In this document: positions 1 to 63,990 of the stretch, piece by piece | How positions within the stretch are numbered: the first letter of the stretch is position 1 | Layout: each line of letters begins with the position of its first letter | NCBI GenBank assembly: GCA_002269645.1 | Contig: NIVC01000293.1 | Location: forward strand, 1-64,000 | DNA: 64,000 nt | Direction of reading: 5' to 3' | DNA from: Macrostomum lignano | Taxonomy: Eukaryota | Program-made: the position numbers and the translations under genes | Notes under the pieces: model-generated | What the model was told of the DNA's origin: nothing | Database searches by the model: none | The model's input: the letters and a program-made list of their open reading frames with translations, nothing else

Positions 1-315
1 TGTATTACAATATTTATGATTTATTACGTTCTATATGGATAAACTCGAAACCAAAATCAGCGAAAATTGGAAGTCTTGTGTCAAAATTAGCCTCGAAATT
101 AGTGGAAGAGTTGCCTAGATATTGCCAGATTTGGTTTTATATACTTTAATTAAAAGCTGTCTAAATTGATGTTCGGCCTGTTTACTGGAAGTTGATTTAA
201 TTTAGTGGAAAGAAGATTAACGGCATAAATACGAACAGGAACACTGAAACAGCAGTTTTCCGCTTACTAGCTCGTATGCCATGCCCGCAGCGCCCTGCAG
301 CTGAACCAGACTGCG

Positions 316-3300
316 ATGAAAACATGCACCAGATTTTTTCGTTACTTTCAACTCATTGTGTTTGGCTTGTTATTTTGGTTTTCTCCATCCGGTACGTTTA
401 TTCTGTTTTGATTAGAGTCAGAAAAAACCAGTTTGCTCTTGCTAAAACGTGGGTTACTAAAAACGCAGAGTGCTGTTCCGGTAGGACGCTTTACTCGTCA
501 TCTGGAACGATCGCGTGCCCCTCCTCTGGAGGCCAGTATTCAAACAATTTGGATGTTTCCTGGTCTATTCGACCACGTGGTGTCAGCCGAATCCGATTCA
601 GCAAGCTGGATGTGGATTCGTGCTGCGACAAAGTTTTAATTTATGAAAGCGCAATCTACGCATCAAGCAGCTCAGAGAAGTTTCGACTTGTGCATGCAAA
701 CGCGACTGAGTCTGAGTTCTGGGTGAATTCCCTTTGTTGTGCGGTTTCGAAGTGACGGGTTTCACACGAGATCCGGATTTCGGCTTTCTTACGAACGCCA
801 GTGGGAATCGATTCCAGGTGAATTTTATGCCTTACGTTTATAACAGCACTCTGGTTGACTTTTGCTGATTTATTTGATCTCGGATGAAAATGGAATTTCA
901 GCTGCTACTGAGGTCATTCGGCAGAGAAGCGGTGTCAGACGGAGCCATCCAGATGTCGGGTCCTACCGCAATAACTACAAAAAAGCTTGGAGTATTTACG
1001 TGCCCAGAAATTCCCGTGTTTTCATTCGATTCACAAAGTTCAACACGGAATCTGGCCGCGACTATCTTAGGATATATTCAGGACTTGTTCCGCGATATCA
1101 ACACACGGCTCTGCAAGCGATTTCAGGCAATCATAGAATTCTTCATCCGTCATACACGTTTTCGCATAGCGTTACCCTAATTTTCACTACTGACGGCTCT
1201 GTTGTCCGTGAAGGGTTCGAATTTGAGTTCAATGTCCGTGAGTGATACAAGACGTCAACAGTATCTGGCAGTTTTTTCAGTTTTATTCAATTCAGAAGTT
1301 AAACTGTTCAGTGCAGAAAATATAAGTTAAAAGTTATGCAATCTTATGTTTATAGTTTCTTTTCTCGGCCAGATACGGACAGAGAAGCAACATAGTTTCC
1401 ATAGTTACTCGTAGTTACATAAATCTGAATAAGTCTCAACATTGTTTATGTTGATGCAGGTTATTTGTACTACGGATTATGCGCCATCGGCCTATCGATT
1501 ATAATGGATAATTAGTTTTAAGCAATGAGAAGAGAACTCTTATAAATTCTCTTTAGATTACATAAATATTATCAACTTCCACAAAAAATCTTAACGCTGC
1601 TACATTTACTCAGTTTGATACTCTTTACAGATGATCATGAATTACTGTGGATCTTTTCAAAATGGACCAGAATGGCCATAGGTGGCTCGAAATTCAGTTT
1701 TTCACTGCTTTCTATGGATCGAAATGTATCAGCTAGGTGTTACTTAGATCTTGAATGTGGAAGGCAAACTTCGGAGATCGCAATGAATTCCGTAAGCCGG
1801 GCATTTATCTGCATTAAATTTTCGAAAAAAGTGCTATATACGAGCGTAATTACTGGTTTAAGTTTTTCTTATAACTTTGCATAGTGAAGGTAATATCTCT
1901 TGACCTTTCAAGTTTGCATTCAAAAGCTTGGACAAATTTAAAGAGCCTCAGATTATATATGAATTGTTTTTGCAATTCCTCCAGACGATCTACTCACAAT
2001 GAAGATCAGTTAAAAAATTGTACCTGTTTTCTGGAATCATCTCAGACACTGCTGTCTGCATTCGAAACATCACGTGCAGATTCCGTGGCAGCGGTATCAA
2101 TGAACTGATTGAATCGACTCCAGCACCTGATGGTAAACAACTTTCTTCAATCAGTTTTTGAGACTCTGCATAGATGTTTTTGAAGAAGCGAAGTGTCTGT
2201 ATTGCAATATTAGCAAAGCGGTTCAGTAACTGTAGCAGATTTTGATTATCCTGCTCTAGTTTCCTTCATACATATGAATAACTTTCAGTTAAGCCAGCTT
2301 CACTTGAAATCAGCCTGATAAAGCCTGAGCTGTGGAGCCTCTCAGATAGTTTGATTCGGTTTCGAGCTGTGTCTCAAGCCGAGTGTCGGCGAGTGAGGCA
2401 TCGCTGCGAGCTGAGGCTTTTCAATGGAAGCGCAGTCACTGCTGTGCAAGTGAAGCGGGTAAGAATAATGTAACAATGCGTAGTTAAAATATTTAGCATA
2501 ATATAATATACTTAGAGTAATTGCTATGATAGGCGTGTACAACTAAACGATGTACACTGTAGGCCCGTACTGATATGCAGATATACGCAATTGTATTTTC
2601 CTTCAATTTACAATACCCAGCTAGCGTATTTTTATTCTGATACAATTGCTACGTCAAAACTTCAGCAAGCATCACAGCCACGTATTTCTCAGTGTGTGAG
2701 CAGAGTTCAAACAGATTTTACTCTGCTGGCTGAGCTCATCGACACAGTCAATTCTACGATAATTTGTTACAAGCAAGCCGGAACAGTCAACTATTCTCTG
2801 CCGGCTATGCAACTGCGTGAGTTGAGTTAAGATTATGAAGTTAATGCATAAATATATGCGTATAATATAAATAATGTATATAGAGCTCATTAAAAACAGG
2901 AATTTTATGTATGCGCATAAAATCACTACGTTAGAATATATAACAGTATATATATAAATATACATAAAAATATATATATATAATATATATATATATAAAT
3001 ATAATATATTAGAATATATAATATATATAACTATAGAATCTTCATACGAGCGTAGAAGCATGATTAGCGATATAGAAAAAAAGCGAGAACGATTACGAAA
3101 GATTTTAACTGATTTATTTTTGTGATTAATTTCATTAATTTTTAATCAAATAATTAACTTATTTGACTCTGTTTTTAAATGAAGTAAAAAGGTGACATTT
3201 GCGAGAGTAGGTTTGCAGAGTTTAAATCATTTGTTCAACGTATGTCATATGTACCAGCTGATTTATTCAATGTTTGGAATGTCGAATAAAGAAAGGTATT

Positions 3301-4771
3301 ATTATGATCGGCTCCTTACAATGGTCATTTCCTTATATCAGCTGTTCGAGAAATTCAATGGAGATTCCCAGAGTCTACTGAGATCGCTGCGGGTGCTCCA
3401 ATGCGCATTTTATTAACAACAGCTGCAAGCATCCGAGGCCTGTCAGCGAAATGTCGGCTGCACCAGGAGTGCGAGAATGGAACCATCGAAGTCCCGATCC
3501 GTGTTGTAAGATATAATCAAAATATTTGATACTTAATGAAGGCAAAAAGAAATAATAATTTTGGCTAAACATATTTGGCATCCGATTAATGTCTATTAAG
3601 GTTGATACTATTTGATATATACTTCTTGTGCGAAGTACTAGCCATATTTCCCACAATATGCATACACCATCAATTATGAAGTTCACTCGTCGTTTTACCT
3701 GCTACCACAGGATCGAATCGTCTCGACATCTTCGGGAAAAGTATTCCAGTTTTTTGGACGATGGCAGCGTCAAGTGTGCAGCCGCAATGTGTCTTGCGCA
3801 TTCTCTGTGCCAGGAATGCTCGGTTCGATTGAATTCAGCCAATTACCTCCAGGTATTGCTGTTGACCTCTCTTGTGATTCATTTATTTCATAACAGCTCA
3901 TAAAAACATGCGTTCTTAATGCATTTACAACCGTTTCTCCGTTTTATTGATTTCAGTTGAACCAAATGACTTACAGCTTAAGTTGATTGATCCTGAGCTG
4001 TGGCTACTCAACGGAGCAATTCAGTTCCGTGCGGTTTCCAAACACGCCTGTCCCAGTGTGAGGCACCGCTGTGAGCTGAGGACGGCTACTAACTATTCGA
4101 TTCCCGCGACGCTAATAAAGAAGGTTGTTTTTGTCTGTTGGCAGCATTATGTAGCTCGCTATGTGCAAGATAGTATGCTTTGCTTAACTTCAGGATGTCT
4201 CGAAGCCCATCGGGCCGCAGTGCTTCAGCTCGGTGATGTCGCAGTTCTTGGCGTTCGCTCAGCCATCAGACGTAGCGGGTTCCACCGTGAGGTGCCGCCT
4301 GCTCAACGGCAGCTCTGCGCTGCTCGTGCTTCCCGAAAAGGGTTTTGGTGAGTTTCGCAGCTGATTTCAGATGTTATACACGAGAAAGCAGCCCTGCTTT
4401 AAATATCGCCTCCATCAACAGGAGAGACGAGGCTGGCCGAAGTCTGGGAGCGGCCACTGCTAGCAGCTTCATCAACTACGGCTGTTCTCGCCATCATTGC
4501 ACTGGTAGCAGTGGTGGCCTGCTTTGTGCTGATGAGATCTGGTCGGTGGCCACCTTGGAAAAAATCTCCGGATGCGTCAGTAGTGAATGAGTCAATGAAG
4601 ATGCAAATGACAGTCAGTAACCAATATTATGGCGAATCAGCAGGCATTGTAAGCAGCTTTAATGTGATTTGAGGCACCAGACTTCATCATATTTTCAGCA
4701 ATGTCAAATTATTAATCATGCTTGCATCCGACTTTCAGCCTGATGACTCAACCGGAGTTTACGTCACGTGA
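316..4771 (+). pseudogene. Paralog A1: CUB-domain type I membrane protein (SP-CUB-CUB-W-P-W-P-TM-tail), disrupted
   Basis: Predicted exons 316-391 (signal peptide MKTCTRFFRYFQLIVFGLLFWFSPS), 469-817, 902-1237, 1631-1791, 1985-2132, 2289-2458, 2666-2816, 3342-3505, 3711-3852, 3957-4123, 4194-4347, 4422-4648 (TM AVLAIIALVAVVACFVLM), 4739-4771 (PDDSTGVYVT*). All are GT-AG with matching phases. Lesions: 2-nt deletion at ~729 relative to A2 (TGA at 753-755) and in-frame TGA at 2000-2002. Confidence 0.85.
2860..3030. repeat. AT-rich / (TA)n low-complexity tract in an A1 intron
   Basis: Runs of TATATA and AATATAT; the matching A2 intron lacks the long tract. Confidence 0.75.
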
Positions 4772-4971: not shown

Positions 4972-5593
4972 ACTCAGCAACAGTCAAAAGTTCTACCCTC
5001 CAAATTGCAAAAACTTCACACACAATTCAACCCTCAAGTTACGCAACTAAGCCGCCGCGAGGAAGGGAAAGTTGATTGAATATCAATACTCGTAGTAAAA
5101 TCATAATTTTTTATGCAATATTTAGTTAGAATCGCGATGCGTGTGGGATCCCCTCGCACGCAGTAAGTGCGACGACTCTGCGGGGCATCCCAATGATGAG
5201 CGGCGCAGAAAGTCCTGGGGAAGCCGCTCCGAAGCGTTTTCAATGGCATGACGCAGAGCTCTCCGCAACATTCTGTGGTGGATTCTCTTTTCGAATGCTA
5301 CGTTTTAGGAAGTCCCAGACATGCTCGATGGGATTCATGTCTGGGGACCGGGAAGGCCAGCGCAGAGTGCGCAGCTGTAGCTGTTCCTTCAGTTGACTAA
5401 CAGCATCGGCTTGGTGTGGCGGGGCGTTGTTCCTGAGCTAGGTCTGCTTAATGTCCAGGCCTGGACCATTAAGCAGACCCAAGCCACCCCCAAGCGGCAA
5501 TAAGCTTTGCGCGTGCCGTAGGTTGCGTCACTCGCAATAAGTTAAAAAAATCATCACGCTTAGTGGGGTGGAACTTTTGACTGTTGCTGAGTA
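4972..5593 (-). mobile_element. Internally deleted Tc1-family DNA transposon
   Basis: 27-bp terminal inverted repeats with one mismatch (4972-4998 / 5566-5592) and TA on the right flank. The minus strand (~5436-5140) reads RNNAPPH...LRWPSRSPDMNPIEHVWDFLKRSI, matching the Tc1 QDNAPxH and WPxxSPDLNPIE motifs. Absent from the A2 copy. Confidence 0.88.
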
Positions 5594-10588: not shown

Positions 10589-10955
10589 CTCCACTCCTCT
10601 CTACCCTCTCTCCCCTCTACCCTCTCTCCTCTCTACCCTCTCTCCTCTCTACCCTCTCTCCCCTCTACCCTCTCTCCTCTCTACCCTCTCTCCTCTCTAC
10701 CCTCTTTCCTCTCTACCCTCTCTCCTCTCTACCCTCTCTCCTCTCTACCCTCTCTCCTCTCTACCCTATATCCTCTCTACCCTCTCTCCTCTCTACCCTA
10801 TATCCTCTCTACCCTCTCTCCTCTCTACCCTATATCCTCTCTACCCTCTCTCCTCTCTACCCTCTCTCCTCTCTACCCTCTCTCCTCTCTACCCTCTCTC
10901 CTCTCTACCCTCTCTCCTCTCTACCCTCTCTCCTCTCTACCCTCTCTCCTCTCCC
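10589..10955. repeat. CT-rich minisatellite built from CTCTACCCTCTCTC units
   Basis: Pyrimidine-rich tandem array; it produces the spurious SLPS/TLSP/LYPL ORF 10448-10969. Confidence 0.92.
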
Positions 10956-15204: not shown

Positions 15205-16006
15205 CTGAAAATTATTTGAATTTTTTACGCTATCACCTTGATTGCTGAGTGTACAGGCTGAAGTTTGAAGGCAACGAAAATGGAATAAAAAGGTAGACGA
15301 GAAGAATAAACAGACGATGCTGTCATGTGTCAGGCATGCATAAATTTCCATCCCAACTTTTTTTAAACGGAGAGTTTCTGTGAAGACACTTATATACGAG
15401 TAACAACGAGTAAGCTGTTTGGCAGTTGGAAGACATGTGATGTGTTTTCAACCCAGTCCTGATTTCAACCATCCAACCCAGTCAACAGTTTTAATTTGCA
15501 CCTGGGATTTCTTGCAAGACCAACGAGTTAATTAAAATGTACTAAACTTCGCTATGCTTTGATAGCAAGTTATGAAGATATGATATCGATTCTCATATTG
15601 ATATGACCAAAACACCAGAAATACTTCAGGGGGTGATTTCTGAAATGAAGTGTTGAGATACGGCACACTTTTACCTTCAAGGCATTCTGTATCACAATAT
15701 TTATGATTTATTACGTTCGATACGGATAAACTCGAAACCAAAATCAGCGAAAATTGGAAGTCTTGTGTCAAAATTAGCCTATAGACATTTGTGGAAAAGT
15801 TGCCTAGATATTGCCAGATTTGGTTTCATATACTTAAATTAAAAGCTGTCTAAATTTGATGTTCGGCCTGTTTACTGGAAGTTGATTTAATTTAGTGGAA
15901 AGAAGATTAACGCGCATAAATACGAACAGGCACATTGAAACAGCAGTTTTCCGCTTACTAGCTCGTATGCCATGCCCGCAGCGCCCTGCAGCTGAACCAG
16001 ACTGCG

Positions 16007-19000
16007 ATGAAAGCAGGCACCAGATTTTTTTGTTACTTTCAACTCATTGTGTTTGGCTTGTTATGTTGGTTTTCTTCATCCGGTACGTTTATTCTGTTTT
16101 GATTAGAGTCAGAAAAAACCAGTTTGCTCTTGCTAAAACGTGGGTTAATAAAAACGCAGAGTGCTGTTCCGGTGGGACGCTTTACTCGTCATCTGGAACG
16201 ATCGCGTGCCCCTCCTACGGAGGCCAGTATTCAAACAATTTGGATGTTTCCTGGACTATTCGATCACGTGGTGTCAGCCGAATCCGATTCAGCAAGCTGG
16301 ATGTGGAGCCATGCTGCGACAAAGTGCTCATTTATCAAAACGCAACCTCAGCCTCAAACAGCTCAGAGAGGTTTCGACTTGTGCATGCAAACGCGACTGA
16401 GTCTGAGTTCTGGGTGAATTCGCCCTTTGTTGTGCGGTTCCGAAGTGACGGGTTTCACACGAGATCGGGATTTCGGCTTTCTTACGAACGCCAGTGGGTA
16501 TCGATTCCAGGTGAATTTTATGCCTTACGTTTATAACAGCTAACACTCTGGTTGACTTTTGCTGATTGATTTTTATCTCGGATGAAAATGGAATTTCAGC
16601 TGCTACTGAGGTTATTCGGCAGAGAAGCGGTGTCAGACGGAGCCATCCAGATGTCGGGTCCTACAGCAATAACTACAAAAAGGCTTGGAGTATTAACGTG
16701 CCCAGAAATTTCAGTGTTTTCATTCGATTCACAAAGTTCGACACGGAATCTGGCTGCGACTATCTTAGGATATATGCAGGAATTGTTCCGGGATATCAGC
16801 ACACGGCTCTGCGAGCAATTTCTGGCAGAAATACAAGTCTTTATCTGTCATACACGTTTTCGCATAGTGTTACCTTCGTTTTTACTACTGACGGCTCCTC
16901 TGTCCGTGAAGGGTTCGAATTTAAGTTCGGTGTCTGTGAGTGTTACAATTAGTCTAAATTATCTTTCAGTTTTTTCAGTTTTTATTTTTTGGATTAGTTT
17001 ATGTAGAAAGTTCAGAAGTTAGGTCACTAATTGTCCTGTGCAGAAAATCTAGACTAAGTTTATGTATTTTTGTTTAAAATGTATTCTTTTGGCCAAATAC
17101 GGGCAGAGAAGAATATTTCTACTCCGTAGATGCGCCATAGGATTATCGAACATTGTATAATGAATTACCGCTTCTAAGCAATGAAAAGGAACTTACAGAA
17201 ATTTCCTTTCAATTACATAAAAAATAGACTTACACAAAAACGTTTACAGCGCTGCATTAACTCAGCATGATACTATATTTACAGATTATCCTGAATTAAA
17301 GGCCATCTTTCCAAAATGGACCGGAATGGCCACAGGTGGCTCAAAATTCAGTGTTTCACTGATTTCCCCGGATCAAAATGTATCAGCAAGGTGTTACTTA
17401 GATCTTGAATGTGGAAGCCGAACTTCGGAGATGGCAATGATTTCAGAAAAATTGGCTCAACCGATTTTCTTCAAACTTGCACCATTCGATCAGAAATTTT
17501 CCTGGGACGGTACATGCATCTTGGCTAAGAAATTGCTCAATGTTAAAGGGATTAAATATTCGAAAAACATGCTTTTTTGCAAAGGTCAAGCAGCTCTTTC
17601 GACCTGAAATGCATTGTAAGAATGCTAGAGAAAAAACTGTCTGACTGAATTTCAATTCTGATAAAGATTGCATCACAACAAGTTGAAAACAGTGCCGAAG
17701 AAATGCACACACGACTTGATTTAAATTGCGTAACCAATATTGCTAACTTGAACTGAGACTGATACTGGCTGACTGAGAAATTGATTATGTCATAACTTTT
17801 TACTTTAATTGACTTGCTGTAAGAATTGAATTATAAGGGCCACAATTCATGTACTCCAATTGAAAAGAGATACGTGACTCCATGTTAAACACTAAAGAGC
17901 CACCATGTCAAACATTAAAGAGCCACGATGTCGAACATTTAAGAGCACCATGTTAAACATAAAGGAGCCACCATGTCGAACATTAAAGAGCCACCATTTC
18001 AAACAGTAAAGAGCCACCATGTCAAACATAAAAGAGCGACCATGTCAAACATTAAAAAACCACTTTGTCTAACATTAAAGAGCCACCATTTCAAACATTA
18101 AAGAGCCACCATGTCAAACATAAAAGAGCCACCATGTCAAACAATAAAAAGCCACTTTGTCTAACATTAAAGAGCCACCATGTCAAACATTAAAGAGCCA
18201 CCATGTCAAACATAAAAGAGCCACCATGTCAAACATAAAAGAGCCACCATGTCAAACATAAAAGAGCCACTATGTCAAACATTTAAGAGCCACCAAGTCA
18301 AACATTTAAGAGCCACCATGTCAAAAATTCAGAAGCCACCATGTCAAACATATATGTGACTTTATGTCAAACTTTAAAGAGCCACTATTTCGAACATTAA
18401 ATAGCCACTTTGTCAAACATTAGAGAGCCGCCGTGTCAAACATAAAAGAGCCACCAGGTTAAACATTAAAGAGCCACCATGTCAAACAATAAAGAGCCAC
18501 CATGTCTAACAGTAAAGAGCCACCATGTCGAACATTAAAGAGCCATCATGTCAAACAATAAAGAGCCATCATATTGAAAATTAAGGAGCCACCATGTCAA
18601 ATATTAAAGAGCCACAATGTAGAACATTAAAGAGCCACAATGTCGAGCATTAAAGAGACACCATGTCAAACATTGAAAAGCCACCATATCAAACAATAAA
18701 GAGCCAGCATTTTGAACATTAAAGAACCACCATGTCAAACAGTAAAGAGCCACAATGTAGAACATTAAAGAGCCACCATGTCGAACATTAAAGTGCCACA
18801 ATGTCAAGCATTAAAGAGCCACCATGTCGAACATTAACGAGCCATGATCTCAAACAGAAAAGAGCTACCAAGTTAGACATAGAAGAGCCACCATGTGAAA
18901 CATATATGTGACTCCATGTCAAACATTAAAGAGCCACCGTTTCCAACATTAAGGAGCCACCATGACAAACATAAAACTGGCACGATGTCAAACATTAAAG

Positions 19001-22000
19001 AGCCACCATGTCAAACATAAAATAGCCACCATTTCAAACACAGGAGAGACATTTTCAAATGTAATAAGAAGCGTCATGCCAATCATAAAGGAGCCCCTAG
19101 AAAGCTAAAAGGAAATGTTGCACTCTATACTTTTTGTCTGGTGGATGCTTGCTATTTAAAGATAGATACTTGCTATCAATTGGATGCTTGCTATCTGGGG
19201 GTTCTTTCTATCTGGGGTGCTTGCTATCTGAGGGATGCTTGCTATCTGAGGGTGCTTGCTATCTGGGGGTGCTTGCTATCTGGGAGGAGGGGGGATGCTT
19301 GCTGTCTTGGGATGTTTTCTTTTTGCATTGCGCTTCATTTGAGCAGTTTTTCTGTTGTCTTTGTGAAGACTCTATTTGACGGTTTTTTTACTTGTAGAGA
19401 ACAGAAGTTCTATCCAGATGTCCCCCATCGGGGGGCGAAGATTGCTAGTTAGGTCACTAATTGTCCTGTGCAGAAAATCTAGACTAAGTTTATGTATTTT
19501 TGTTTAAAATGTATTTTTTGGCCAAATACGGGCAGATAAGAATATTTCTACTCCGGATTATGCGCCATAGGATTATCGAACATTGTATAATGAATTATCG
19601 CTTCTAAGCAATGAAAAGGAACTTACAGAAATTTCCTTTCAACTACATAAAAGTTTTGACTTACACAAAAACGTTTACAGCGCTGCATTAACTCAGCATG
19701 ATACTATATTTACAGATTATCCTGAATTAAAGGCGATCTTTTCAAAATGGACCGGAATGGCCACATGTGGCTCAAAATTCAGTGTTTCACTGATTTCAAT
19801 GGATCAAAATGTATCAGCAAGGTGTTACTTAGATCTTGAATGTGGAAGCCGAACTTCGGAGATGGCAATGAATTCCGTAAGCCGTGCATTTTTCTGCATT
19901 AAATTTTCGAAAAAAGTTGCATATATTTACTGGTTTAAGTTTTTCTTATAATCTTGCATAGCGAATGTAATCTTTTTCGACCTTTTAATGTTTTAATGTG
20001 AAATTAAAACCAAATTTACGGAGGTCTTAAATTATTTGAATTGTTTGCCATTCCCTCAGACGATCTACTCACAGCGAAGATCAGCTCAAAAATTGTACTG
20101 ATTTTCTGGAATCGTCTCAGATACTGCTGTCTGCATTCGAAACATCACGTGCAGACTCCGTGGCAGCAGTATGAATGAACTGATTGAATCGATTCCAGCA
20201 CCTGATGGTAAAACGTATTTAATCATTTTCTGAGACTGTAGATCTGCAAAAAAATTTGAATAGGTGAAAGTGTCTGAATTCGATAATTAGCAAAGCCATA
20301 CAATAACTGTATCAGATTAGTGATTATCATGCCCTAATTCCTTTTACAAGTATGAATCTGATTTTCAGTTGACCCAGTCTCGCTTGGAATTAGCCTGATT
20401 AAGCCTGAGCTGTGGAGTCTCTCAGATGGTTTGATTCGGTTTCGAGCTGTGTCTCAAGCCGAGTGTCGGCGAGTGAGGCATCGCTGCGAGCTGAGGCTTT
20501 TCAATGGAAGCGCAGTCACTGCTGCGCAAGTGAAGCGGGTAAGAATAATGTAATAATGCGTAGTTTAAATATTTAGCAAAATATAATATACTTAGAGTAA
20601 TTGCTATGATAGGCGTGTACAACTAAACGATGTACTGTAGGCCCGTACTGATATGCAGATATACGCAATTGTATTTTCCTTCAATTTACAATACCCAGCT
20701 AGCGTATTTTCATTCTGATACAATTGCGGCATAAAAACTTCAGCAAGCATCACAGCCACGTACTTCTCAGTGTGTGAGCAGAGTTCAGACAGACTTTGCT
20801 GTGGTGGCTGAGCTCATCGACACAGTCAATTCCACGGTAGTTTGTTACAAGCAAGCCGGAACAGTCAACTATTCTCTGCCGGTTATGAAACTGCGTGAGT
20901 TGAGTTAAGATTATGAAATCAATGCATAGATGAATACAAATAATAGGAATTTAGTATATAGAACTTCATTAGAACAAGAAGTATATATATTCGCATAACG
21001 TCACTTGAATCGAAATTGAACGAAAAAAGCAATCTAACATGCTATTACTATTACTTTATTCATCGTAAAGTTGATTCTAAAATAAGAAATACTTTATTCG
21101 AATATTAGGCGTTTCTGACTCTGTTTTCAAATAAACATGTGAAATTGGCGGCAATTTTGAGAGTTCTAATCAGGTGAAAAATGTGTCCTATGTACAGCTG
21201 ATTTATTCCATGCTAAAAATTGAAAATAAAAGAAAAGATTCTCAGCTCCTTGCAATGATCATTCTCTTATCCCAGCTGTTCGAGAAATTCAATGGAGATT
21301 CCCAGATTCTGCTGGAATCACTGCGGGTGCTGCAGTGCGCATTTTGTTTACAACAGCTGCAAGCATCCGAGGCCTGTCAGCGAAATGTCGGCTGCACCAG
21401 GAGTGTGGGACTGGAACCATCGAAATCCCAATGCGTGTTGTAAGATGAAAAATCAAAGTATTTGACACCCAACGCAGGCAAATAGAAATATATATTTAGG
21501 CTAAACATTAGTTTGCATCAGATGAAAGCCTATTAAGGTTGATACTATTTCGTACACTATTCTTGTACTAGTCATATTGCTCACGTTATTCACACCATCA
21601 ATTATTAAGCTCAATCGTCGCTTTACCTGCTACCACAGGATCGAATCGTCTCGACGTCTTTGGGCAAAGTATTCCACTTCTTTGGAAGATGGCAGCGTCA
21701 AGTGTGCAGCCGCAATGTGTCTTGCATATTCTCTGTGCCAGGAATGCTCGATTCGATTGAATTCAGCGAATTACCTCCAGGTATCGCTTTTGAACTCTCT
21801 GGCTAATAGTTTCCTTCATAACAGCGCATAAAAAGCAAGGCCCTTGATTCATTTAAAACAAACTATGTAATCAAAGCCCGTTTCTGCGTTTTTTAATTGA
21901 TTTCAGTTGAACCAAATGACTTACAGCTTGAGTTGATTGATCCTGAGCTTTGGCTACTCAATGGAGCGATTCAGTTCCGTGCGGTTTCCGAACTCGCCTG

Positions 22001-22733
22001 TCCCAGTGTGAGGCATCGCTGTGAGCTGAGGACGGCCACTAATTATTCGATTCCTGCGACACTGATAAAGAAGGTTGTTTTTGTCTGTTGTCAGCCTTTT
22101 TTGTAGCTAGCTATTTGTGCAAGATAGTATGCTTTGCTTAACTTCAGGATGTCTCGAAGCCCACCGGACCTCAGTGCTTCAGCTCGGTGATGTCGCAGTT
22201 CTTGGCGTTCGCTCAGCCATCAGACGTAGCGGGTTCCACTGTGAGATGCCGCCTGCTCAACGGCAGCTCTGCGCTTCTCATGCATCCCGAACTGGGTTTT
22301 GGTGAGTTTCGCAGCTGATTTCAGATGTTATACACGAGGAAGCAGCCGTGCTTTAAATATTGGCATATTGCCTCCATCAACAGGAGAGACGAGGCTGGCG
22401 GGAGTCTGGGAGCGGCCACTGCTAGCAGCTTCATCAACTACGGCTGTTCTCGCCATCATTGCACTGGTAGCAGTGGTGGCCTGCTTTGTGCTGATGAGAT
22501 CTGGTCGGCGGCCACCTTGGAAAGAATCGCCGGATGCGTCAGTAGTGAATGAGTCAATGAAGATGCAAATGACAGTCAGTAACCAATACTATGGCGAATC
22601 AGCAGGCATTGTAAGCAGCTTTAATGTGATTTGAGGCACCAGACTTCATCATATTTTCAGCAATTTCAAATTATTAATCATGCTTGCATCCGACTTTCAG
22701 CCTGATGACTCAACCGGAGTTTACGTCACGTGA
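16007..22733 (+). CDS. Paralog A2: CUB-domain type I membrane protein; 656 aa if the W1 exon pair is skipped, otherwise truncated
   Basis: Predicted exons 16007-16082, 16160-16510, 16600-16935, [19716-19876, 20060-20207 with TGA at 20099-20101], 20369-20538, 20744-20894, 21276-21439, 21639-21780, 21907-22073, 22148-22301, 22384-22610, 22701-22733. All other exons are open and phase-compatible. CUB motifs LDVEPCCDKVLIY and FRSDG...GF are present. Confidence 0.8.
17441..19448 (+). mobile_element. 5'-truncated non-autonomous Helitron-like element
   Basis: 3' hairpin CCCCC-ATC-GGGGG, then CTAG (19445-19448) followed by T. Shares GGCTCAACCGATTT, GGGACGGTACATG, GATTAAATATTCGAAAA and an 18-bp minisatellite with the element at 36242-37680. 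Confidence 0.78.
17878..19040. repeat. 24-bp minisatellite (AAAGAGCCACCATGTCAAACATTA), roughly 45-50 degenerate units
   Basis: Contiguous tandem units without spacers, inside the Helitron-like element. Confidence 0.95.
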
Positions 22734-24779: not shown

Positions 24780-25261
24780 TGATGCTTGCCATCTGGGAGA
24801 TGCTATCTGGGGGATGCTTGCTATCTGGGGGATGCTTGCTATCTGGGGGATGCTTGCTATCTGGGGGATGCTTGCTATCTGGGGGATGCTTGCTATCTGG
24901 GTGGATGCTTGTGCTATCTGGGAGATGCTTGCTATCTGGGAGATGCTTGCTATCTGGGGGATGCTTGCTATCTGGGGGATGCTTGCTATCTGGGTGGATG
25001 CTTGCTTTCTTGGGGATGCTTTCTATTTAGGGGGAATGTCTGTTATCTTTGTGAAAGCTTTAATATGTCATCTTTGTCAATTTTAGAAAAAAGAGATTCA
25101 TAGGAAACATCTTTGTCCGTGACAATTTTACTTGATTAATGTGACTTTTAAAACTAAAGAAAAAGGAGTTAGGTCCTGAGAAAATGTGAATTTTAATTTT
25201 TTCCATGAATAATTTTTGCTCCTTGCTTATTGGGCCCCGAAGGAGGGCACTAGATTGCTAG
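24780..25261 (+). mobile_element. 3' part of a Helitron-like element with 18-bp minisatellite
   Basis: (TGGGGGATGCTTGCTATC)n at 24780-25030; hairpin GCCC-CGAAGGA-GGGC at 25234-25248; AGATTGCTAG|T end at 25261. Confidence 0.72.
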
Positions 25262-26803: not shown

Positions 26804-29737
26804 CTACTTATTAGTAGCTGATATCTGTTCGCATACCATTTGTACGAGCGTACTACAAAAATCAGAAACGACAGCGAGACAGCTCCCTTATCAGGGCATA
26901 CCCGTAGATATCTGAAATCCTGCATGCAAGCGTCCAAGTTACATTGCAACCAGATGTGTAGCCAGAAGGTTAAGTATACGACAACCCTTCAAATGAAAAA
27001 GTGCTCCAATGGCAGCAGAAACACTCATTGGCAGTAGCTTTTGGCACGCTGAAGATACGGGCTGAGAAAAAACCTGGCTAAGAATACGAGCTAAGCATAC
27101 TCAAGCTATTCAGCCTAAGCCCGGATAAAATGAAGTACGATCGTAGCTTTGTCGTCGAATTGTCAGACCCACCGCGCAATCATTTTAGCCTTCGATCTGA
27201 TTAGTTGTTTACAGTACTTGTTCTTTATTTTGTGCAATTTCACATACTTCTGAAAAAACTGTGAAAAAACTTCATTTCTTCTAAGGATGAACGAATTTGA
27301 CCAAAATTATCAACACAAGATACCATAAAATACTGATTTTTGCGAAATTCATTATCTTTATTTCGAGATGATGTGCAACACTTTATATTCTTTGACCCCC
27401 TGCACGTGGCCTCTATCATACTGCTGTCGCTACCAGTCTTGATTAACCACTGGGTGGCAACGCAGCTCAGGGAGAGGTAAGGATGACTGGTATTTCAGCT
27501 CTGCCGTACTCTGTTCCTCTCCCCCGCCCTCCGCAGGACTCAACCGTATGGGCATCAAGGCGGTGGCCACGGCTAATCTCAAGTCATGGCTAGTCAGTTC
27601 AAGGAAGCATTTAATGTTTAAATGTCTCCTTTAACCCAGATCTCTCCGATATTTTTAAGCACGGGAATTTCTGCCACCTCATCCATGCCTATGGGCTACC
27701 GGGCGACCGATCACCCACTTTCTAGAGAGGGACAGAACTGCGAACGACGGCACCACCGGATCTTCCTGCGCGACATCGTAGCACCAGCTGCCCGTGATTG
27801 CCATGGGTCTGTGGAATGGGCGGCAACACCTCCCATCTGCACCCAGTATACTCCAGGAAGCCTTGCAGCTATGTTGTGTATTGGATAGTCGATGTGTCGG
27901 TTGATTTGGTTTTACTGAGAGCTCAATCCATCTATTCAATAATGCTAAAATGATTTCATTTATGCGCACTGGCTTTGTGTACGTTCTACGTACTCATGGA
28001 CAAAGAAGACAAACGCTATACTGGCAAATCGCGAGGCCGATTTCTGGAAATAAATTTTCGCTACAAAATACAGTATGAGACACTCGCGATTTTCAATATG
28101 AGTTCCAGAAGGTGCGAGACTGCGGTGGATGTTGTGCTAAAAAACTTAAATCTTGAAATCTTGAGTGTAGGTTCCTTCTGCTTTAGTTGCCCGTGCCCCG
28201 ACTAAGTAAGGAAAATGGCAGGTTCATTTAAAGTTACATATGGTTAGAATTGAAGTTCTCCGATTCAGTGTTTATATACATCTATTGAATCGGAAAACTT
28301 ACGAGTAATAACCAATTATATTCGCTTGCAGAAGCCTTCAATATTTACATTCCTGCTAATCCTTGTGATTCGTCTACCGGTGAAGTTCGCTCTACGAGAG
28401 TAGTTATCTTGTTTATGGTTTCCGTTCGGGAAACACTTGATGGACGCTGGCATAGATTGAAAGGCCGTTCTTATTTTAAATACATGCAGATGTATTATTT
28501 CTTACGCGTAACTTCAGCTTAATATTTTTGGAATTTAAGGTCTAAATATATAAATGTAAAGAAAGTTCAACTTGAAATTGCTAAGGTTTAATAAAGTTTA
28601 CAAACTGGTCCGAAAATTGCAAATGACCCGTGAAAACTCAAGCAATTATTTCACTTCATATTATCACTTGGCTGTGTTAATTTAAAAATGTTAGTAACAA
28701 CAGCAAATTTGTTCCTAGTATAGCTTCTATTGATAATATCTGCAATGTTTTTGTAAATGCAACTCAAAAGATTAAATGTTTATTGAAGATCAAGTCTAAT
28801 TCTGGAGATGACCATTTGCTGAGAGGCATCGCCAAATACAGATTCTATTGAAAATATTAAAAGGTTGTTGAATAAAAAATACACAATGGTCGTGCATACT
28901 CTTATTAATTTCCTTTAAGAGCGTAAGCCATGAGAACATGCTGCTGTATTGATGTCACCATGAGAACTTACATGGATTTACACAATTAGGTTCGAAGTTT
29001 TTTACTGCTAACCAAAGCTACCTACATGAAAGTGCTACAAGTAAATAGAAATCGCAAAGAAACATCTGCTAAATATTTAACCTTAAACCACGACTACATT
29101 TACCTAGTAGTGTTTCCGTAGCCATCAGCTTTCTTTTGCCAAAAGATCTGTATCAATGTTAAAGACTTCGCCCAAGCTCGTTGTTATCGTAGTTACTGCT
29201 ATTTTTACAGTTTGGTCATGTGATGAAAGTCTTGTATAATTAAAACTTTGCTAGAAAAGCAAGCAATGAAAGTGTTTTAACAGATTTAATCTCTAAGAGA
29301 AAATTTCTTCTTGCTCTGACCAAAATGTCAGAGTCCAAAAAAAATTTACTCTTATAGTACATGTATAAAAGCTTCATTATATGAATAAACTTTTTAAACG
29401 CTTTAGGTCCAGATTGAAAGTTTATCAACGAGAGCAGTAAATTAAAATCATGCTGGAATGAAAAACGTTTACTTGCCGCTTCTATCCGCACATATTCGTA
29501 GTGCAACCTCCAGCACATTCGGGGAAGGCTGAAAAATGTTAGCGTCTTAAAGGCTGCAGTTGGCTGCTGTCTGGTGATTTTCACTTGCACCCGTCCTTGT
29601 TTATTTAAAACGCGTCACTGAAGCGCATTAGCGGCAGTCCAAACTTAGAAACTTGCTGATTTATTAAACTTTGAACTATTCATTGCAACTTGCAGTTTGT
29701 TGAAAGTATGCTCATATTAAATCATTTTCTGCAACAG

Positions 29738-35313
<5,576 letters not shown>

Positions 35314-42400: not shown

Positions 42401-44547
42401 TCTGCATGTACACTCTGAATCGTCTCCAGTTTTTGAGCTCAGCACTGAACAACATTCAGCAACGAATCATACTATTGAGTTTGTCTTCCCGGAAGCTGTC
42501 AATATTGTCTTTGTTATCAACCGTATTGCACTACTATCGAGCTTCGTGTTTGAGTTTAGTGTCGGTGCGTTTTCGAATTCAATTTATCTAGTACTAATAT
42601 CTAAAAAAAGCGGAATGATAAGAGTTATTGTGGGGCTTTAAGGTTGCGAGGCAAAAATTTTGTACCAATAAACCACAGGTATCATAAGTAAAATGCTGTA
42701 ATCATTTCCTAATTTTAACAGTCTATGCATGTATTGAAGCATACGATGGTTCTTTAGTATCTTGTTCAACAAGAGATATAGGAAAAATGCTTGGCTTCTA
42801 AGGCTAATCACTATACTAAGCGTAAAATTACACAAACCGTACCACCTAAATTCTGCAGGAAGAACACTATTGCCCGTTGTGCCAGTTTGGTCAGGAACTG
42901 CTTTAAGTTTATCCTCATTAAGATTGCTCGTGAGATCCGCAACAGCCGATATTCAGGTCTACTGTAAATTTCAGCCGAAGTTTTCCCAGGAAGATGTCTT
43001 CGTACAGGTATGGCAGCTCTTTTTGTTAGCAAAATTAAACGTAAAAGTCCCGCCAAAAAAGCTAAAGATTCTAGATACGACTCATACTTTCAGCTAACTC
43101 AGGTGGAACCAAACGTTGTCGAATCAGAGTTTGTTATCGGCTCCTCAGCTATTCAAAGCATCCACAATGTCTGCATCCATCGAGTGACTTGCATAGCTAC
43201 CTGGGCGGTTGGTTTGCCTAGGAAGGTTGAACAGATTGTTGCTCTACTCCCAGGTGAGAGAAAAATTAGCCAATTAGTTGCGTGATTTATTTAGTCATAA
43301 ATCCTAAAATCGAATGCGTCTCTTCAGCTGATCCAGAAAATGCAACAGTCACGTTAGTTCAACCCAAGTTGTTGTCCTTCGGCATCCTTCAGTTCCGTGT
43401 GATTTCGGAGAACTCCTGCCCAAGAGTGATACACCGGTGTGGGCTGAAAACGGCCAATGGAAGCAATATTCCCGCTATACTGATCAAAAAGGTTCGCATC
43501 CAAACAAATGACTTCACAAACAATTTCACTTCATCATTTAATCTCAATCGCACATTTCTTTTCACAGACCGTGTCAGACCCAGTTCTACCAGAGTTTCGC
43601 AGCACAGTGACGTCACAGTTCTCAGCGTTCGCTCATCAAGCAGTCATCAAAGGATCAATCATTAAGTGTCGCCTCTTTAAAGGAAACTTTTTGGAGCGTT
43701 CTGTGTCGCACCTATGTGGCGAAATTCAAACTGCTGCTTTGACACCAAAATCAGCTAAGCTTCCAGGACTCTGGAAGAGATGGGCTCTTGTAGCTTCATC
43801 CACAGTAGCAGTCATCGTCATCATTGCTTTGTCAGCTCTCTCGCTTGCGCTGCTTTTCAGGCGAAAGAAATATAGGTCTCATAGGACTGTGAACAGAAGC
43901 ACGGTTTCAGCATCGAGGTTCAGTCATTATCAAACTGGGGAATATGAAAACTCGGTATGTAATCTGCGGTTTTTCAGGATTATTTATGATATAGTGTCCA
44001 AATTGGGAGATAGACTAGCAGAGACAGAAGTTGGCGTTGGAGTGAAGCTATTTCTGCGGGTTTGATGAAGGTGTTGATACTGTCGATGTATACCGAACTG
44101 TTATAGTACCCAGCTAGCTAAGACAACGATCAGCCAGTACGGTCCCTGGAGTAGACTGAGCTTACGAGCTAAATTAGAGTCGACAGCGATACGTTCTAGC
44201 TTTGGCAGGAACCCGCAAGCTCGCCCTGAAAGATGAATTAGAGATTCCTGCCAGAGTCCTGTGTGTATGTGACATAATTCAAATCATAAGGGAGATTATG
44301 CAATGTCTGTATAGCTCTACTAATGGGAGCAAAGATAGGTTACCTTACAATCAACTGCAACTTGAAAGACTTCTTCAAGAAGAGAATGGTTTAAAAAAAC
44401 TCTTGACGGCAAGAGACTAGATACATTATGGGGCCTGTACATTACCCTGCTTATTTTAACATGATAATGACAAAATATCAATAGAATCATGCTAAAAACT
44501 GTTTAAATTTTCAGGGCATCAGTCTTACAGGTGTTTATGTCACCTGA
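39448..44547 (+). CDS. Paralog C: SP-4xCUB-W-P-TM-tail, 809 aa, apparently intact
   Basis: Predicted exons 39448-39520 (MNFQIVTKIVSVIAILFSKTVRVT), 40020-40388, 40554-40898, 41376-41783, 42223-42564, 42859-43007, 43094-43253, 43328-43491, 43568-43954 (P-b fused with TM), 44515-44547 (GISLTGVYVT*). Sum 2430 nt, open. Confidence 0.85.
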
Positions 44548-47940: not shown

Positions 47941-48602
47941 AGCTACATTTATGCAAAATGTTAATAACTACATGCAACTTTATTGAAATGCTCTTTATGA
48001 TCTTATTTGAAAGTACTTTCCCCGCGGCACTCTTGATTTCTCTGAACTGAAAGACTAGGTAATTTTTTGGGTGGCTCTCTACTTCAATTTAAAAATATAA
48101 GCCAGAGCCGATCCTTTATATTCTGTGTGGTCCTTTTATTGCAATCTTTCACAATAATGTATACCTTATTTCTGACCGACCCTGCGGGTGGCGGTACAAT
48201 CGCAATCGCGAACTAACGTGTACTTAAGTTGAAATTCAAATCATTTTGATACATTCGTTTGTAAAGTTTCCATAAATACAATAAACAGTATCAATTAATG
48301 CTACAATTATTAGAAAAGGATATAGATTTCAGAACCAATTTTGTATTTCAGAGAGTCAGAAATAACAGGTTCACGTGTAATTTATAGTTAAGAGCTCGTA
48401 GTTTAGAAGTTAGATTTCGAACTGTTATCTAACAAAACGCTAATAAATGTTTACGGAGGATGTATATGCGATATGAATAAATAATTAAGCCACTAAATAT
48501 AAAGCCACTAATATCGCCAAACTATCTTTGCTCTACCATTCGAGATTCGATTGATTATCATCTTAAATTGAAATTGCTAATAAGAATCTAAAATCCTGAC
48601 AG

Positions 48603-51600: not shown

Positions 51601-53587
51601 TTAGACGCGGAGTTTTGCCCGCCGTTTCCCGTTTCTTTAATTCGGTTTAAGAAAGCAAAGCGTTCTGACTTGGGGGTGGGGGGTTCACAAACTCGAAATT
51701 TCACAACGTCGAAAGCACCTTCTTTCACAAGGTCGAAATTTCATAACCGAAGTTTCATGTTATGAAACTTCGACCTTATGAAATCTCTTGCTAGAGTTTT
51801 CGATGTGAAATTTCAACCTTGTGAAGTTTCGACCTTGTGAAATAATTTAATTTTCGACGTTAGGAAATTTTGACCTTGTTGAAGCAGCGCCCTCTGACTT
51901 GGTACTCTGGGAAGCTGAATTGACACAAGAAGGAAAGAGAGAGAAACCGTAAGAGGACAGAAAGCTTTCGGCCAGTCGGGCAACTCCATCCCAGGATAGC
52001 CTAATTCAGGACTCGAAAAAACGAGAGTAGGAATTTAGAAAGCTAAAAAATTTAGATTACGAGCTAGTGTTTGCCGCTTGACACTGCTACCACGAATACT
52101 TCATTGTGCAAGGAGTCTTAACTGGTAGTAAAATCTGGATCGAATAGCTAGAAGTAGGGCCTACAAAAACTTGGTGGCAGCGTTAGGATATAGTGTATAA
52201 ACAAATTAGCCTTAGAACACTTGGTGGGATTTACAAACGTAGAGGAAAAGCCCTCGTACAGTACATACTAAGCAATCCAAATTTGAATGGCTACTCAGAT
52301 TCGTTTCCGGTCTTCATTTTATTTCAGGTCGCAATGTGAAGCCGCTCATTGACACCTGGTCAGGTTCAACCGAAAGTCTTAGCTCTCTCAGAGTACTCGT
52401 TCATTCATCCACTGCAGATGCTCAGACCAGCTGCACAATATTTTCTATGTGCTCAGAGCAACCTGTTACTTTTAAAGTAATATTTAACATATTTGTTGTG
52501 TTAATTTTATATTGTTTGCGGATGTGCTTTGCTTATTACATGTGCCGATGTTGTGTCATATTTATGCCTTGCAGCTAAGGACTATGTACCAAAACGTAGT
52601 CGAATCTGAATTTATAATCGACTCTTCAGCAATTCAATCCATTGGAAATTTCTGCATTCGCAGAATCTCTTGCACTGTCACATGGGCCATTGGACTCCCA
52701 CGAAAGGTCGAGCAGGAGACAGTATTACCATCACGTGAGAGAAAGTTTTTAATCTCATATAATCTGATCTTAAAAATGAATTAATCTTAGATGTGTTTTA
52801 TTCCAGCCAACCCAGAGAATGTGAAACTCGAATTAGTTCAACCTAGACTGCTGTCATTTGGAATAATTCAATTTCGTGCCGTGTCCGAGAACTCCTGCCC
52901 TAGTGTAACACATCGATGTGAGCTGAGGACGTCTAATGGTACCATTATTCCCGCAATGCTAATAAAAAAGGTTGGCATTCTTTTTTGAATAAAACTGTTG
53001 ATATAATTACCAGTTTAGACGTCATTTTTTAAAGTTATATTATATAGGAAATAACGAACACAGTTGCTCCTCGGTGTATTGGAACGGTAACGTCTCTGTT
53101 GTCCGTGTTTATTAAACCATCAATTATCTCAGTGTCAGCTATTAGCTGTCGTTTGTTAAACGAAAGCCTCTCCGAAAGTTTTATCCTGAAATCGTACCAT
53201 GGTGAGTGCAAAGTGCATATCACTAAAAGCATTAAATTGCACTTCACTGTCTGATCAGACTCGATAAACATCAATTTACAGAAGCAGAGCGGAAGAAAAT
53301 TTTGGAGAGGCCCAAGGTATTATTTACAAAAATAGTTGGTGTCCTCGTCATCATTATAATCGCTTTGCTGATTTCGATCACCGCGCTATGCTGCAGACGA
53401 CGCAGAAATACTCCAGCTCAAACTGCGATGAGACAACCGGCTTCAAAATTCAGGTTTAGTCGCTACGTTACCGAGGATTACGAAAACTCAGTAAGTTAAA
53501 AAACTAAATGACAGATTTAAAATACGGCCTACCTAGGGCACATCTGCCTTACAGGATTCCCACGTTGCCAGCGTGTACGTCACCTAA
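48603..53587 (+). pseudogene. Paralog D: SP-4xCUB-W-P-TM-tail, disrupted
   Basis: Predicted exons 48603-48654 (MNIVVLTLIIRYWITVA), 49353-49715, 49792-50136, 50395-50751, 50879-51215, 52328-52476, 52575-52734, 52807-52970, 53048-53201, 53282-53490, 53555-53587 (DSHVASVYVT*). In-frame TAA at 49938-49940 in CUB2; the CUB4 exon is 337 nt with a frameshift near 51090. Confidence 0.87.
48789..49093. repeat. MITE-like element with an internal ~19-bp tandem (TTTAGCGxTTGTGAAG)
   Basis: About 12 units; imperfect terminal inverted repeat TTCACAAGCGCT / AGCGCTTGTGAA; lies in intron 1 of D. Confidence 0.7.
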
Positions 53588-54109
53588 ATCAGCTACCATC
53601 GACGAGCTACCAGTCATTTTCAGGATACAGGGCCCGTTCTATAAAGCCATCGTAAGATAAAATCATTCTTAGCTCCTGTCACGATGTTGGCGTAGCGGCT
53701 AACTATGGCTATGACCCTTAAAAGGGCCGTTTTGACGAGAGTTGTAGTGAGTCGTAGTCCCAAAATAAGTTGAAGTCAACTCTTGTAAAGCGGATTTTGT
53801 AGCGGAGCACTTGGCGATGAAGGCAGGAACTGCCGTAGTTGGTTTTATTGGTAGTATCAATATTAGGCTTGGTTATTACTGTCAATACACAAACTATAGC
53901 TTTCTGGGCACTGGCGGCTGCAACAATGGTTTTTTTGAAGATAAATTGGATATGAAGTCAAGTGACAGACGAATGATGCAATGGCGACGTAACGTGATGA
54001 GCAATGGCAATGAGCACAGTGGAGGCGGTGAGTAGCAGTGGCGAGTTTGTCGTCAGCCGTGGCGTGAGATAAGGAGGCTCGAGGCAGCCAGACAGAGAGA
54101 AGGAAAACA

Positions 54110-59720: not shown

Positions 59721-63990
<4,270 letters not shown>

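Follow-up and report, generated by a model that had tools for sequence, protein, structure and literature searches.

The first 64 kb of contig NIVC01000293.1 of the flatworm Macrostomum lignano (assembly GCA_002269645.1), the stretch of DNA analysed here and called the window below, carry six paralogous genes in tandem, all on the + strand, which we delineated by comparing all translated pieces with one another and by inspecting the frames of the + strand (G1 to G6, Table 1). Their products are membrane proteins that carry, next to the membrane, a domain of about 105 residues, here called P, whose nine copies in the window are the subject of this study. The composition of the window is 37-44% G+C, and its exons are short and bounded by AG and GT. 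The 817-aa protein PAA86082.1 (P0022, Mlig019335.g1) aligns exon by exon to 29708-35310, that is to G3, and its GenBank gene is found at 29708-35313 of NIVC01000293.1; record and window coordinates are equal. The spliced translation of 2289-4672 matches M. lignano proteins only, and intact full-length paralogues have been deposited as PAA76314.1 (759 aa), PAA86082.1 and PAA75150.1 (592 aa). In the 25.6-kb GenBank stretch NIVC01000293.1:19708-45313, which holds parts of G2 and all of G4, the sole called gene is G3, and therefore several members of the cluster seem to be unannotated in the assembly.

The encoded proteins follow a single order: a signal peptide, two to four CUB domains, one or two pairs of a domain that we call Q followed by P, a transmembrane (TM) helix and a short tail. 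Pfam recognises the CUB domains (PF00431, with E 2.8e-18 in P0006, 4.1e-9 in P0022 and 9.7e-18 in P0014), and a Pfam search with the full-length proteins returned no family other than CUB. N-terminal hydrophobic leaders can be read from the sequences, as can a hydrophobic segment, about 23 residues long, behind P. With a signal peptide, Pfam-recognised CUB domains and one TM helix, the host proteins have the make-up of single-pass CUB receptors, and P is always their last extracellular domain, the next exon being that of the TM helix. Tail peptides of the VYVT/VYLN type ((E/G)VYVT or EVYLN) occur at or beyond the 3' end of the six genes. In G1, G3 and G6, where a deposited model or a stop codon allowed us to check it, the tail is a separate last mini-exon; the model P0001 splices ...KSPDASV of G1 to PDDSTGVYVT.

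The initial annotation had described P as an unrecognised two-exon domain with four cysteines, present at nine intervals. Each of these intervals does hold a P copy on the + strand, with the described peptides in one frame per exon, and their number is exactly nine (P1 to P9). Hidden Markov models (HMMs) of the two half-domains, run against the six-frame translation of the whole window, recover the nine places at E 1e-20 to 1e-31 and no further copy better than E 0.05; the nine copies being the training set of these HMMs, it is the absence of additional copies that is informative. The layout in phases 1-0-1 is equally well founded, with an AG acceptor at the start of each unit, a GT donor at its end and GT/AG at the internal intron. 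Exon A measures 164-170 nt (phase 1 to 0) and exon B 139-154 nt (phase 0 to 1), with AG/GT at every exon. P9 is irregular: its exon B has 156 nt, and its P-like frame is reached only through the weaker exon A donor GTACGA at 63057 (phases 1-1-1), as the stronger donor GTGAGT at 63053 breaks the P-like frame of exon B. The P unit is thus bounded by phase-1 introns in eight of the nine copies, and likewise in P9 with the alternative donor. A second in-frame acceptor lies 27 nt downstream in exon B of P1 (2693) and P3 (20771), and it is the one used by UniProt transcript-style models, P0001 and P0002 joining VKR directly to CVSRVQ.

The cysteines of P stand at positions 31, 38, 65 and 89 of 106. 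The C-x6-C of the first half is found in all nine copies, and the full set of four, attributed to every copy, in seven, since Cys3 is replaced by Phe in P6 (43568-43715) and by Tyr in P9 (63135-63290). The C-x23-C pattern of the second half applies to six copies only: P6 and P9 are devoid of its first cysteine and P8 has a spacing of x21. In the nine-copy alignment the residues P2, F23, S27, C31, H36, C38, L40 and C89 are invariant. The canonical immunoglobulin (Ig) Trp had been described as absent, and no Trp is conserved on strand C of P, where the invariant residues are C38 and L40. Non-sister copies share 25-49% identity. N-glycosylation sequons (NGS, NYS, NIT, NAT, NES), as read from the alignment, are frequent in P, which fits an ectodomain.

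P is a real, protein-coding domain under purifying selection, since the ratio of nonsynonymous to synonymous substitution rates (dN/dS) lies at 0.16-0.57 among the copies, even for pairs whose synonymous sites are saturated, and since its exons occur in deposited M. lignano protein models. Could the copies nevertheless be functionless, as decaying pseudo-exons or open frames derived from repeats? The in-frame stops in the adjacent Q1 exon B of G1 and G2, the phase irregularity of P9, the cysteine losses in G4, the call of G3 as the sole gene of the 19708-45313 record and the several deposited models that are frame-shifted or skip exons would all suit such a view. However, each of the 18 P exons is an open frame between AG and GT, dN/dS stays at 0.16-0.57 even at synonymous saturation, and the intact full-length proteins PAA76314.1, PAA86082.1 and PAA75150.1 have been deposited, which makes decay of P extremely improbable.

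P never stands alone. Directly upstream of it there is always Q, a second unrecognised domain of about 100 residues with four cysteines, encoded by two exons in phases 1-0-1, with a CX5C motif in each exon and an N-terminal W-x-G motif. That P is one half of a Q-P cassette of four exons, in phases 1-0-1-0-1, was overlooked in the initial annotation. This cassette is phase-symmetric (1-1), which allows its duplication in one piece; two cassettes are present in G1, G2 and G6. No Pfam family matched Q, and the best hit of its profile in the PDB was not significant (E 0.31, to the D-E-F region of an Ig heavy-chain variable domain, VH). A word-indexed search with the Q alignment found nothing at E<=0.01; even the M. 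lignano members already known escaped it.

The first Q domain of G1 and of G2 may be decaying. Its exon B contains an in-frame TGA in both genes, at different codons (1984-2132, TIYSQ*RSVKK..., in G1; 20059-20207, ...SAQKLY*FSG..., in G2). PAA76314.1 is open at this exon, and the deposited G1 and G2 models skip it or begin beyond it. G2 moreover contains an internal duplication of about 2.4 kb within 17285-19880, with the first Q1 exon present at 17285-17380, where its donor context is lost, and again at 19716-19876; the duplication encloses a 50-copy array of a 23-nt tandem repeat (17880-19040).

P had been called unrecognised, and sequence searches leave it so. Five representative copies found no Pfam family at E<=10, ig, I-set, V-set, C1-set, C2-set and Ig_3 included, nor did the nine-copy profile retrieve any PDB chain at E<=10; neither a known non-Ig family nor an Ig family was thus matched. 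Among 1.84 billion representative proteins, the profile search (HMMER) gave 11 matches, ten of them M. lignano proteins annotated as "CUB domain-containing" or hypothetical. The eleventh, P0012, is a leucine-rich repeat (LRR) surface protein of Lachnospiraceae with E 6.7e-5. Its score is made up of four partial matches of about 10 bits and 25 residues each, with individual i-E (independent E-values) of at least 7.5e3, which pair the P hairpin VRHRCELRT..G..I.A.LIKK with the F-G hairpin VQYRCRITDANGKTVTSSAVKLTI of Pfam Ig_3/I-set repeats; comparison of the P hairpin with the bacterial Ig_3 by hhalign gave a probability of 55% over 25 columns (P 1.2e-4). We rejected P0012 as a P homologue, as these are summed sub-threshold hairpins with a resemblance of motif only. 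By its sequence, P is a lineage-restricted family, so far found in M. lignano alone.

How does P fold? The initial annotation had guessed an Ig-like fold, and structure prediction points in the same direction. The AlphaFold2 model of P2, built on the nine-copy alignment, is all-beta, with seven strands (6-10, 20-30, 38-41, 47-58, 67-76, 86-90 and 96-100) and two helices of 4-5 residues (predicted local distance difference test, pLDDT, 87.8; predicted TM-score, pTM, 0.79). Compared with the PDB by Foldseek, it found mainly Ig C-type domains among its best matches, namely T-cell receptor (TCR) C-gamma, pre-TCR, IgM C-mu4, IgNAR C3, IgE C-epsilon and butyrophilin IgC, with a query-normalised TM-score (TMq) of 0.5-0.59 and E 2e-3 or worse; Ig domains make up most of the 50 single-domain matches listed. 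In the model of the Q2-P2 tandem (pLDDT 79, pTM 0.67) the strands of P were reproduced and Q was predicted as an eight-strand all-beta domain. This tandem model gave 918 Foldseek matches at E<=1e-3, the best at 5.9e-7, and each of the 50 listed is a chain of two Ig domains (Fab light chains, IgY, IgM, IgA and IgG Fc, tapasin and butyrophilins).

The tandem model is least confident at the Q/P junction, where the 10-residue blocks covering 91-110 score 64 and 69, and it keeps a high confidence over the junction of P exons A and B. This profile argues for a domain boundary at the phase-1 introns, as had been assumed from the start. One may propose instead that the structural unit is shifted by one exon and consists of exon B and the next exon A, the C-terminal hairpin of exon A being the true Ig F-G hairpin. 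The lone cross-kingdom similarity, in which this hairpin and the exon boundary behind it correspond to the F-G hairpin of Ig_3 and the end of its domain, reaches 55% and P 1.2e-4 in hhalign and would agree with such an offset. We hold it to be highly implausible, as exons A and B alone fold confidently (pTM 0.79), the confidence of the tandem drops between Q exon B and P exon A and not between A and B, the single hairpin matches have i-E of at least 7.5e3, and with the shift every gene would be left with unpaired half-domains, one following the CUB head and one preceding the TM helix.

The models thus support an Ig-like beta-sandwich of about 105 residues for P. ZP-N, FN3 and SEA, the other families to be considered, did not turn up: none has a Pfam match with P, none is represented in the 50 Foldseek matches listed for the single domain, and the 50 listed for the tandem contain no FN3 structure. 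Furthermore, the cysteines of P do not fit the ZP-N pattern (C1-C4 and C2-C3, with the first and last on terminal strands), the P model is all-beta and not an alpha/beta sandwich of the SEA kind, a family marked by a GSVVV-type autoproteolysis site, and the three or four conserved cysteines of P are unlike the disulfide-free FN3, which conserves a Trp on strand B and a Tyr on strand C. Topology alone leaves an s-type sandwich compatible with the model. It is conceivable, if unlikely, that P is a sandwich of another lineage (FN3-like, C2/s-type or de novo) that has converged on an Ig-like shape. The missing Ig match among Pfam and PDB sequences would be expected in that case, as would the Foldseek E of 2e-3 or worse in a list that also contains DUF4426, CBM21 and flavivirus E domain III, and the tight five-residue C-C' turn suits a C2/FN3 topology as well as C1. 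On the other hand, Ig domains form the majority of the 50 single-domain matches listed and all of the 50 tandem matches listed, with no FN3; phase 1-1 symmetric units and mid-domain introns, both present in P, are classical features of Ig-superfamily genes; and both halves of P contain the hydrophobic-x-C-x-hydrophobic ... G ... hairpin typical of Ig F-G. As for membership of the superfamily, P has the predicted beta-sandwich and the phase-1 bounds, and it has neither an Ig sequence profile nor the canonical Cys-Trp-Cys. Because of these last two points we do not file it in any existing Ig set: the sequence family is new, and the fold is a very well known one.

The position of the cysteines in the model suggests how they could be paired. 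Taking the DSSP strand ranges, and assuming that B pairs with E and C with F as in Ig-like sandwiches, strands B (20-30) and E (66-76), of 11 residues each, are antiparallel at i+j=96, which is also the sum of C31 and C65; strands C (37-41) and F (86-90), of five residues each, pair at i+j=127, the sum of C38 and C89. In the same register the conserved F23 is opposite the conserved F73, and C38 and L40 face C89 and V87, all on the core side. The CX5C motifs of Q similarly fall on its C/F ladder (C37+C83 = C43+C77 = 120). Since the cysteine sums equal the strand-register sums, we propose that the disulfides of P would be cross-strand staples within a sheet, C1-C3 between B and E and C2-C4 between C and F, and not the local loops of C-x6-C and C-x23-C. 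The B-side cysteine (C31) is at the strand end and not mid-strand, and the F-strand cysteine (C89) is present. These staples would stand in for the inter-sheet B-F disulfide of classical Ig domains, and Cys2 would then occupy the canonical position of the C-strand Trp, beside the canonical F-strand Cys. If these staples are real, P would be a clean natural case of an Ig core that has been re-pinned, with Cys replacing the canonical Trp. Cross-strand disulfides are often redox-labile.

Several known systems can be set beside P. Ig constant-type domains (TCR C-gamma 1hxm_B, IgM C-mu4 4jvw, IgNAR C3 4q9c, IgE C-epsilon 4gt7), its best structural matches, are also seven-strand, two-sheet sandwiches of about 100 residues with phase-1 introns on either side, and Ig V-C or C-C two-domain chains resemble the Q-P tandem (E about 1e-6). 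P differs from the constant-type domains in its identity of 7-18% to them, the lack of a profile match and of the C-strand Trp, the place of its cysteines (B end, C start, E start and within F, instead of mid-B and mid-F), its two short helices in the A-B and E-F connections and the phase-0 intron that splits it. In adhesion molecules of the NCAM type each Ig domain is encoded on two exons. The mid-domain intron, the phase-1 outer bounds, the tandem of Ig-like domains and the type I membrane protein are common to both; however, Pfam (I-set/Ig) does recognise the domains of NCAM, in which the B-F disulfide and the Trp are retained, and neither is true of P. The disulfide of CD4 D2 joins strands C and F. 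CD4 D2 is an Ig domain with a cross-strand, intra-sheet disulfide, and CD4 D1 an Ig domain on two exons (PMC4354306). The proposed C2-C4 staple of P on C/F would thus be like that of D2, and the two-exon structure is like that of D1, whereas a second staple (B-E) is proposed in P, whose pairing is deduced from a model, the sequences are not similar, and CD4 D2 is not the juxtamembrane domain of a CUB receptor.

At the level of the whole protein, NETO1/2, SOL-1 and LEV-10 of C. elegans, the neuropilins and CDCP1 are single-pass receptors with CUB domains. They share with the M. lignano proteins the type I topology, the N-terminal array of CUB domains (two to four or more), the spacer behind it and the shortness of the cytoplasmic tail, and this likeness is one of architecture only; LDLa, FV/VIII or MAM domains, or no spacer at all, are found where the Q-P cassette stands here. 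The Ig-like domains of the Hydractinia Alr allorecognition proteins are undetectable by sequence and were recognised via structure prediction. Again, the genes form a lineage-specific tandem cluster and encode type I membrane proteins whose Ig-like ectodomains are seen only in predicted structures, but they belong to another phylum, have no CUB head and no sequence relation to ours. An allorecognition role of the Macrostomum genes, by analogy with Alr, would be pure speculation.

What could the Q-P pair be for? We propose that it forms a rigid, N-glycosylated and disulfide-stapled juxtamembrane stalk, which would hold a ligand-binding CUB head off the membrane of a single-pass receptor, and that the short cytoplasmic tail, with its conserved Tyr motif (VYVT/VYLN), would signal. 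The four-exon cassette has been duplicated inside genes, and the genes themselves in tandem. The structural part of this proposal, drawn from the models, is probably correct; its functional part, that is Q-P as a stalk and signalling by the tail, appears to us the most likely reading and is put forward with less assurance than the structure.

Several points weigh against it. There is no significant sequence-level link between P and any Ig family, and the bacterial match sets the C-C' hairpin of P on the F-G hairpin of Ig, a register at odds with homology. The single-domain P model has no Foldseek match at E<=1e-3, a TM of about 0.55 does not separate Ig, FN3 and other s-type sandwiches, and the models were built from just seven to nine paralogous sequences. 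The disulfide pairing depends on the strand ranges and the assumed strand partners given above, and under this pairing P6 and P9, which keep Cys1 without Cys3, would carry a free thiol. Some genes of the cluster look partly decayed, with stops in Q1 exon B of G1 and G2 and cysteines lost in G4. Finally, the literature yielded no expression, localisation or ligand data: for CUB domains in M. lignano it gave unrelated work on adhesion, and for six gene identifiers nothing.

A different function would be that of a recognition surface in a fast-diversifying receptor cluster (immune, mating or self/non-self), in which the loops of P and Q bind a ligand or dimerise in cis. Six tandem paralogues, whose non-sister P copies are 25-49% identical and which differ in how many CUB domains and cassettes they have, in a lineage-restricted family, would suit such a function, and the unpaired cysteines of P6 and P9 could make intermolecular bonds. 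However, dN/dS is well below 1 in all comparisons, the conserved residues are those of the core and the Cys positions, as in a scaffold, and P is always juxtamembrane, the usual place of a spacer domain. We consider this role quite unlikely for P, and prefer that of a stalk.

The exon structure also bears on splicing. As A exons are of phase 1 to 0 and B exons of phase 0 to 1, skipping a B+A pair stays in frame and would yield a fusion in which the N-terminal half comes from Q and the C-terminal half from P. The UniProt (WormBase-type) models P0001, P0002 and P0009 do skip exon pairs in frame (3342-4347; 61407-63060): P0001 joins Q2 exon A to P2 exon B (...IEVPIRV|DVSKPIGPQCF...), and in another example Q1 exon A of G6 runs straight into the tail of P8 exon B. 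In the models P0003 and P0005 some exons are read in the wrong frame. If hybrids of Q exon A and P exon B fold, alternative splicing at the locus would produce chimeric Ig-like domains. One may go further and suppose that P and Q keep a half-domain (protodomain) gene structure, with three-strand exons like Ig E-F-G and the intron at the pseudo-twofold axis. We regard both ideas as very doubtful; if true, they would offer a present-day illustration of how the Ig fold could have arisen from half-domains. The comparison of P with Q by hhalign was not significant (E 0.026), nor was the best pair, P exon B against Q exon A (P 0.0027 before correction for seven tests). An internal duplication, for which exons A and B look alike by eye (QF.A...VR.RC.L..G), was rejected, the hhalign of the half-profiles not being significant either (E 0.15).

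With P and Q the Ig-like fold would gain two extracellular domain families that are not yet catalogued, and some 200-400 unannotated residues per protein would be explained in M. lignano proteins now called "CUB domain-containing" or "hypothetical". Once more, structure prediction recognises domains of lineage-specific surface receptors that sequence profiles had missed. To the specialist P would be plausible rather than surprising. The practical value is modest: HMMs of P and Q could be made to annotate Macrostomum and other flatworm genomes, and a gene cluster is defined in a model organism for regeneration and sexual selection.

Table 1. Genes of the cluster and the exons of their P, Q, transmembrane and tail segments (window coordinates)
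Feature	Gene	Position	Strand	Remarks
Gene G1	G1	~300-4770	+	2 Q-P cassettes
P1 exon A	G1	2289..2458	+	phase 1 to 0, AG/GT-bounded frame KPASLEISL...VQVKR, HMM A E 2.6e-29
P1 exon B	G1	2666..2816	+	phase 0 to 1, alternative in-frame acceptor 2693
Q2 exon A	G1	3342..3505	+	AG/GT, phase 1 to 0; in P0001 at 100% identity; all-beta in tandem model
Q2 exon B	G1	3711..3852	+	AG/GT, phase 0 to 1; near-identical counterpart in full-length paralogue P0006
P2 exon A	G1	3957..4123	+	HMM E 2e-30; sequence used for structure model
P2 exon B	G1	4194..4347	+	HMM E 1e-27
TM exon LLAASSTTAVLAIIALVAVVACFVL	G1	4422..4582	+	directly after P2, phase-1 join
Terminal mini-exon PDDSTGVYVT + stop	G1	4740..4771 (5' end approximate)	+	DDSTGVYVT 4742-4768, CAG acceptor upstream, TGA after
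Gene G2	G2	~15900-22730	+	2 Q-P cassettes
P3 exon A	G2	20369..20538	+	HMM, AG/GT
P3 exon B	G2	20744..20894	+	alternative acceptor 20771
Q2	G2	21276..21780	+	exons 21276-21439, 21639-21780
P4 exon A	G2	21907..22073	+	HMM, AG/GT
P4 exon B	G2	22148..22301	+	HMM, AG/GT
Gene G3	G3	29708-35310	+	gene of PAA86082.1 / Mlig019335.g1
Q	G3	33261..33651	+	exons 33261-33409, 33492-33651; directly upstream of P5; matches P0022
P5 exon A	G3	34021..34187	+	sequence in P0022
P5 exon B	G3	34263..34416	+	HMM, AG/GT, P0022
Gene G4	G4	~39950-44300	+	
Q	G4	42859..43253	+	exons 42859-43007, 43103-43253; second Cys lost
P6 exon A	G4	43328..43491	+	HMM, AG/GT
P6 exon B	G4	43568..43715	+	Cys3 replaced by Phe
Gene G5	G5	~49200-53600	+	
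Q	G5	52328..52734	+	exons 52328-52476, 52575-52734
P7 exon A	G5	52807..52970	+	HMM, AG/GT
P7 exon B	G5	53048..53201	+	HMM, AG/GT
Gene G6	G6	~59850-63990	+	2 Q-P cassettes
Q1	G6	61407..61846	+	exons 61407-61588, 61684-61846; partly in P0009
P8 exon A	G6	61924..62087	+	HMM, AG/GT
P8 exon B	G6	62159..62297	+	C3-C4 x21
Q2	G6	62383..62777	+	exons 62383-62552, 62636-62777; in P0009
P9 exon A	G6	62887..63057	+	strong donor 63053; P-like frame needs 63057
P9 exon B	G6	63135..63290	+	156 nt, Cys3 replaced by Tyr, irregular phase
Tail peptides	G1 to G6	4742-4768, 22704-22730, 35293-35310, 44263-44274 or 44533-44544, 53573-53584, 63967-63987		

Other elements lie between and within the genes. Just downstream of G1, on the - strand, an open frame at 5243-5437 that ends in ...RSPDMNPIEHVWDFLKRSIRK... 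looks like a remnant of a Tc1/mariner-type transposase. Between G4 and G5 three overlapping open reading frames are found on the + strand at 46103-47315, in a G+C-rich island (54.5% in 46001-48000); one of them contains the CCHC zinc-knuckle-like motif CPTHGKKCNSCGKLNHFS, which suggests a gag fragment of a retroelement. A second G+C-rich stretch is present at 56-58 kb. Within G6, an (AGT)75 array at 60276-60499 gives poly-Ser when read in the frame of the first CUB exon, and a (TCTG)65 microsatellite occupies 63325-63581, in the intron that separates P9 exon B from the TM exon. Further arrays are located at 10594-10953, 24801-25035, 33672-33987 and 37174-37612.

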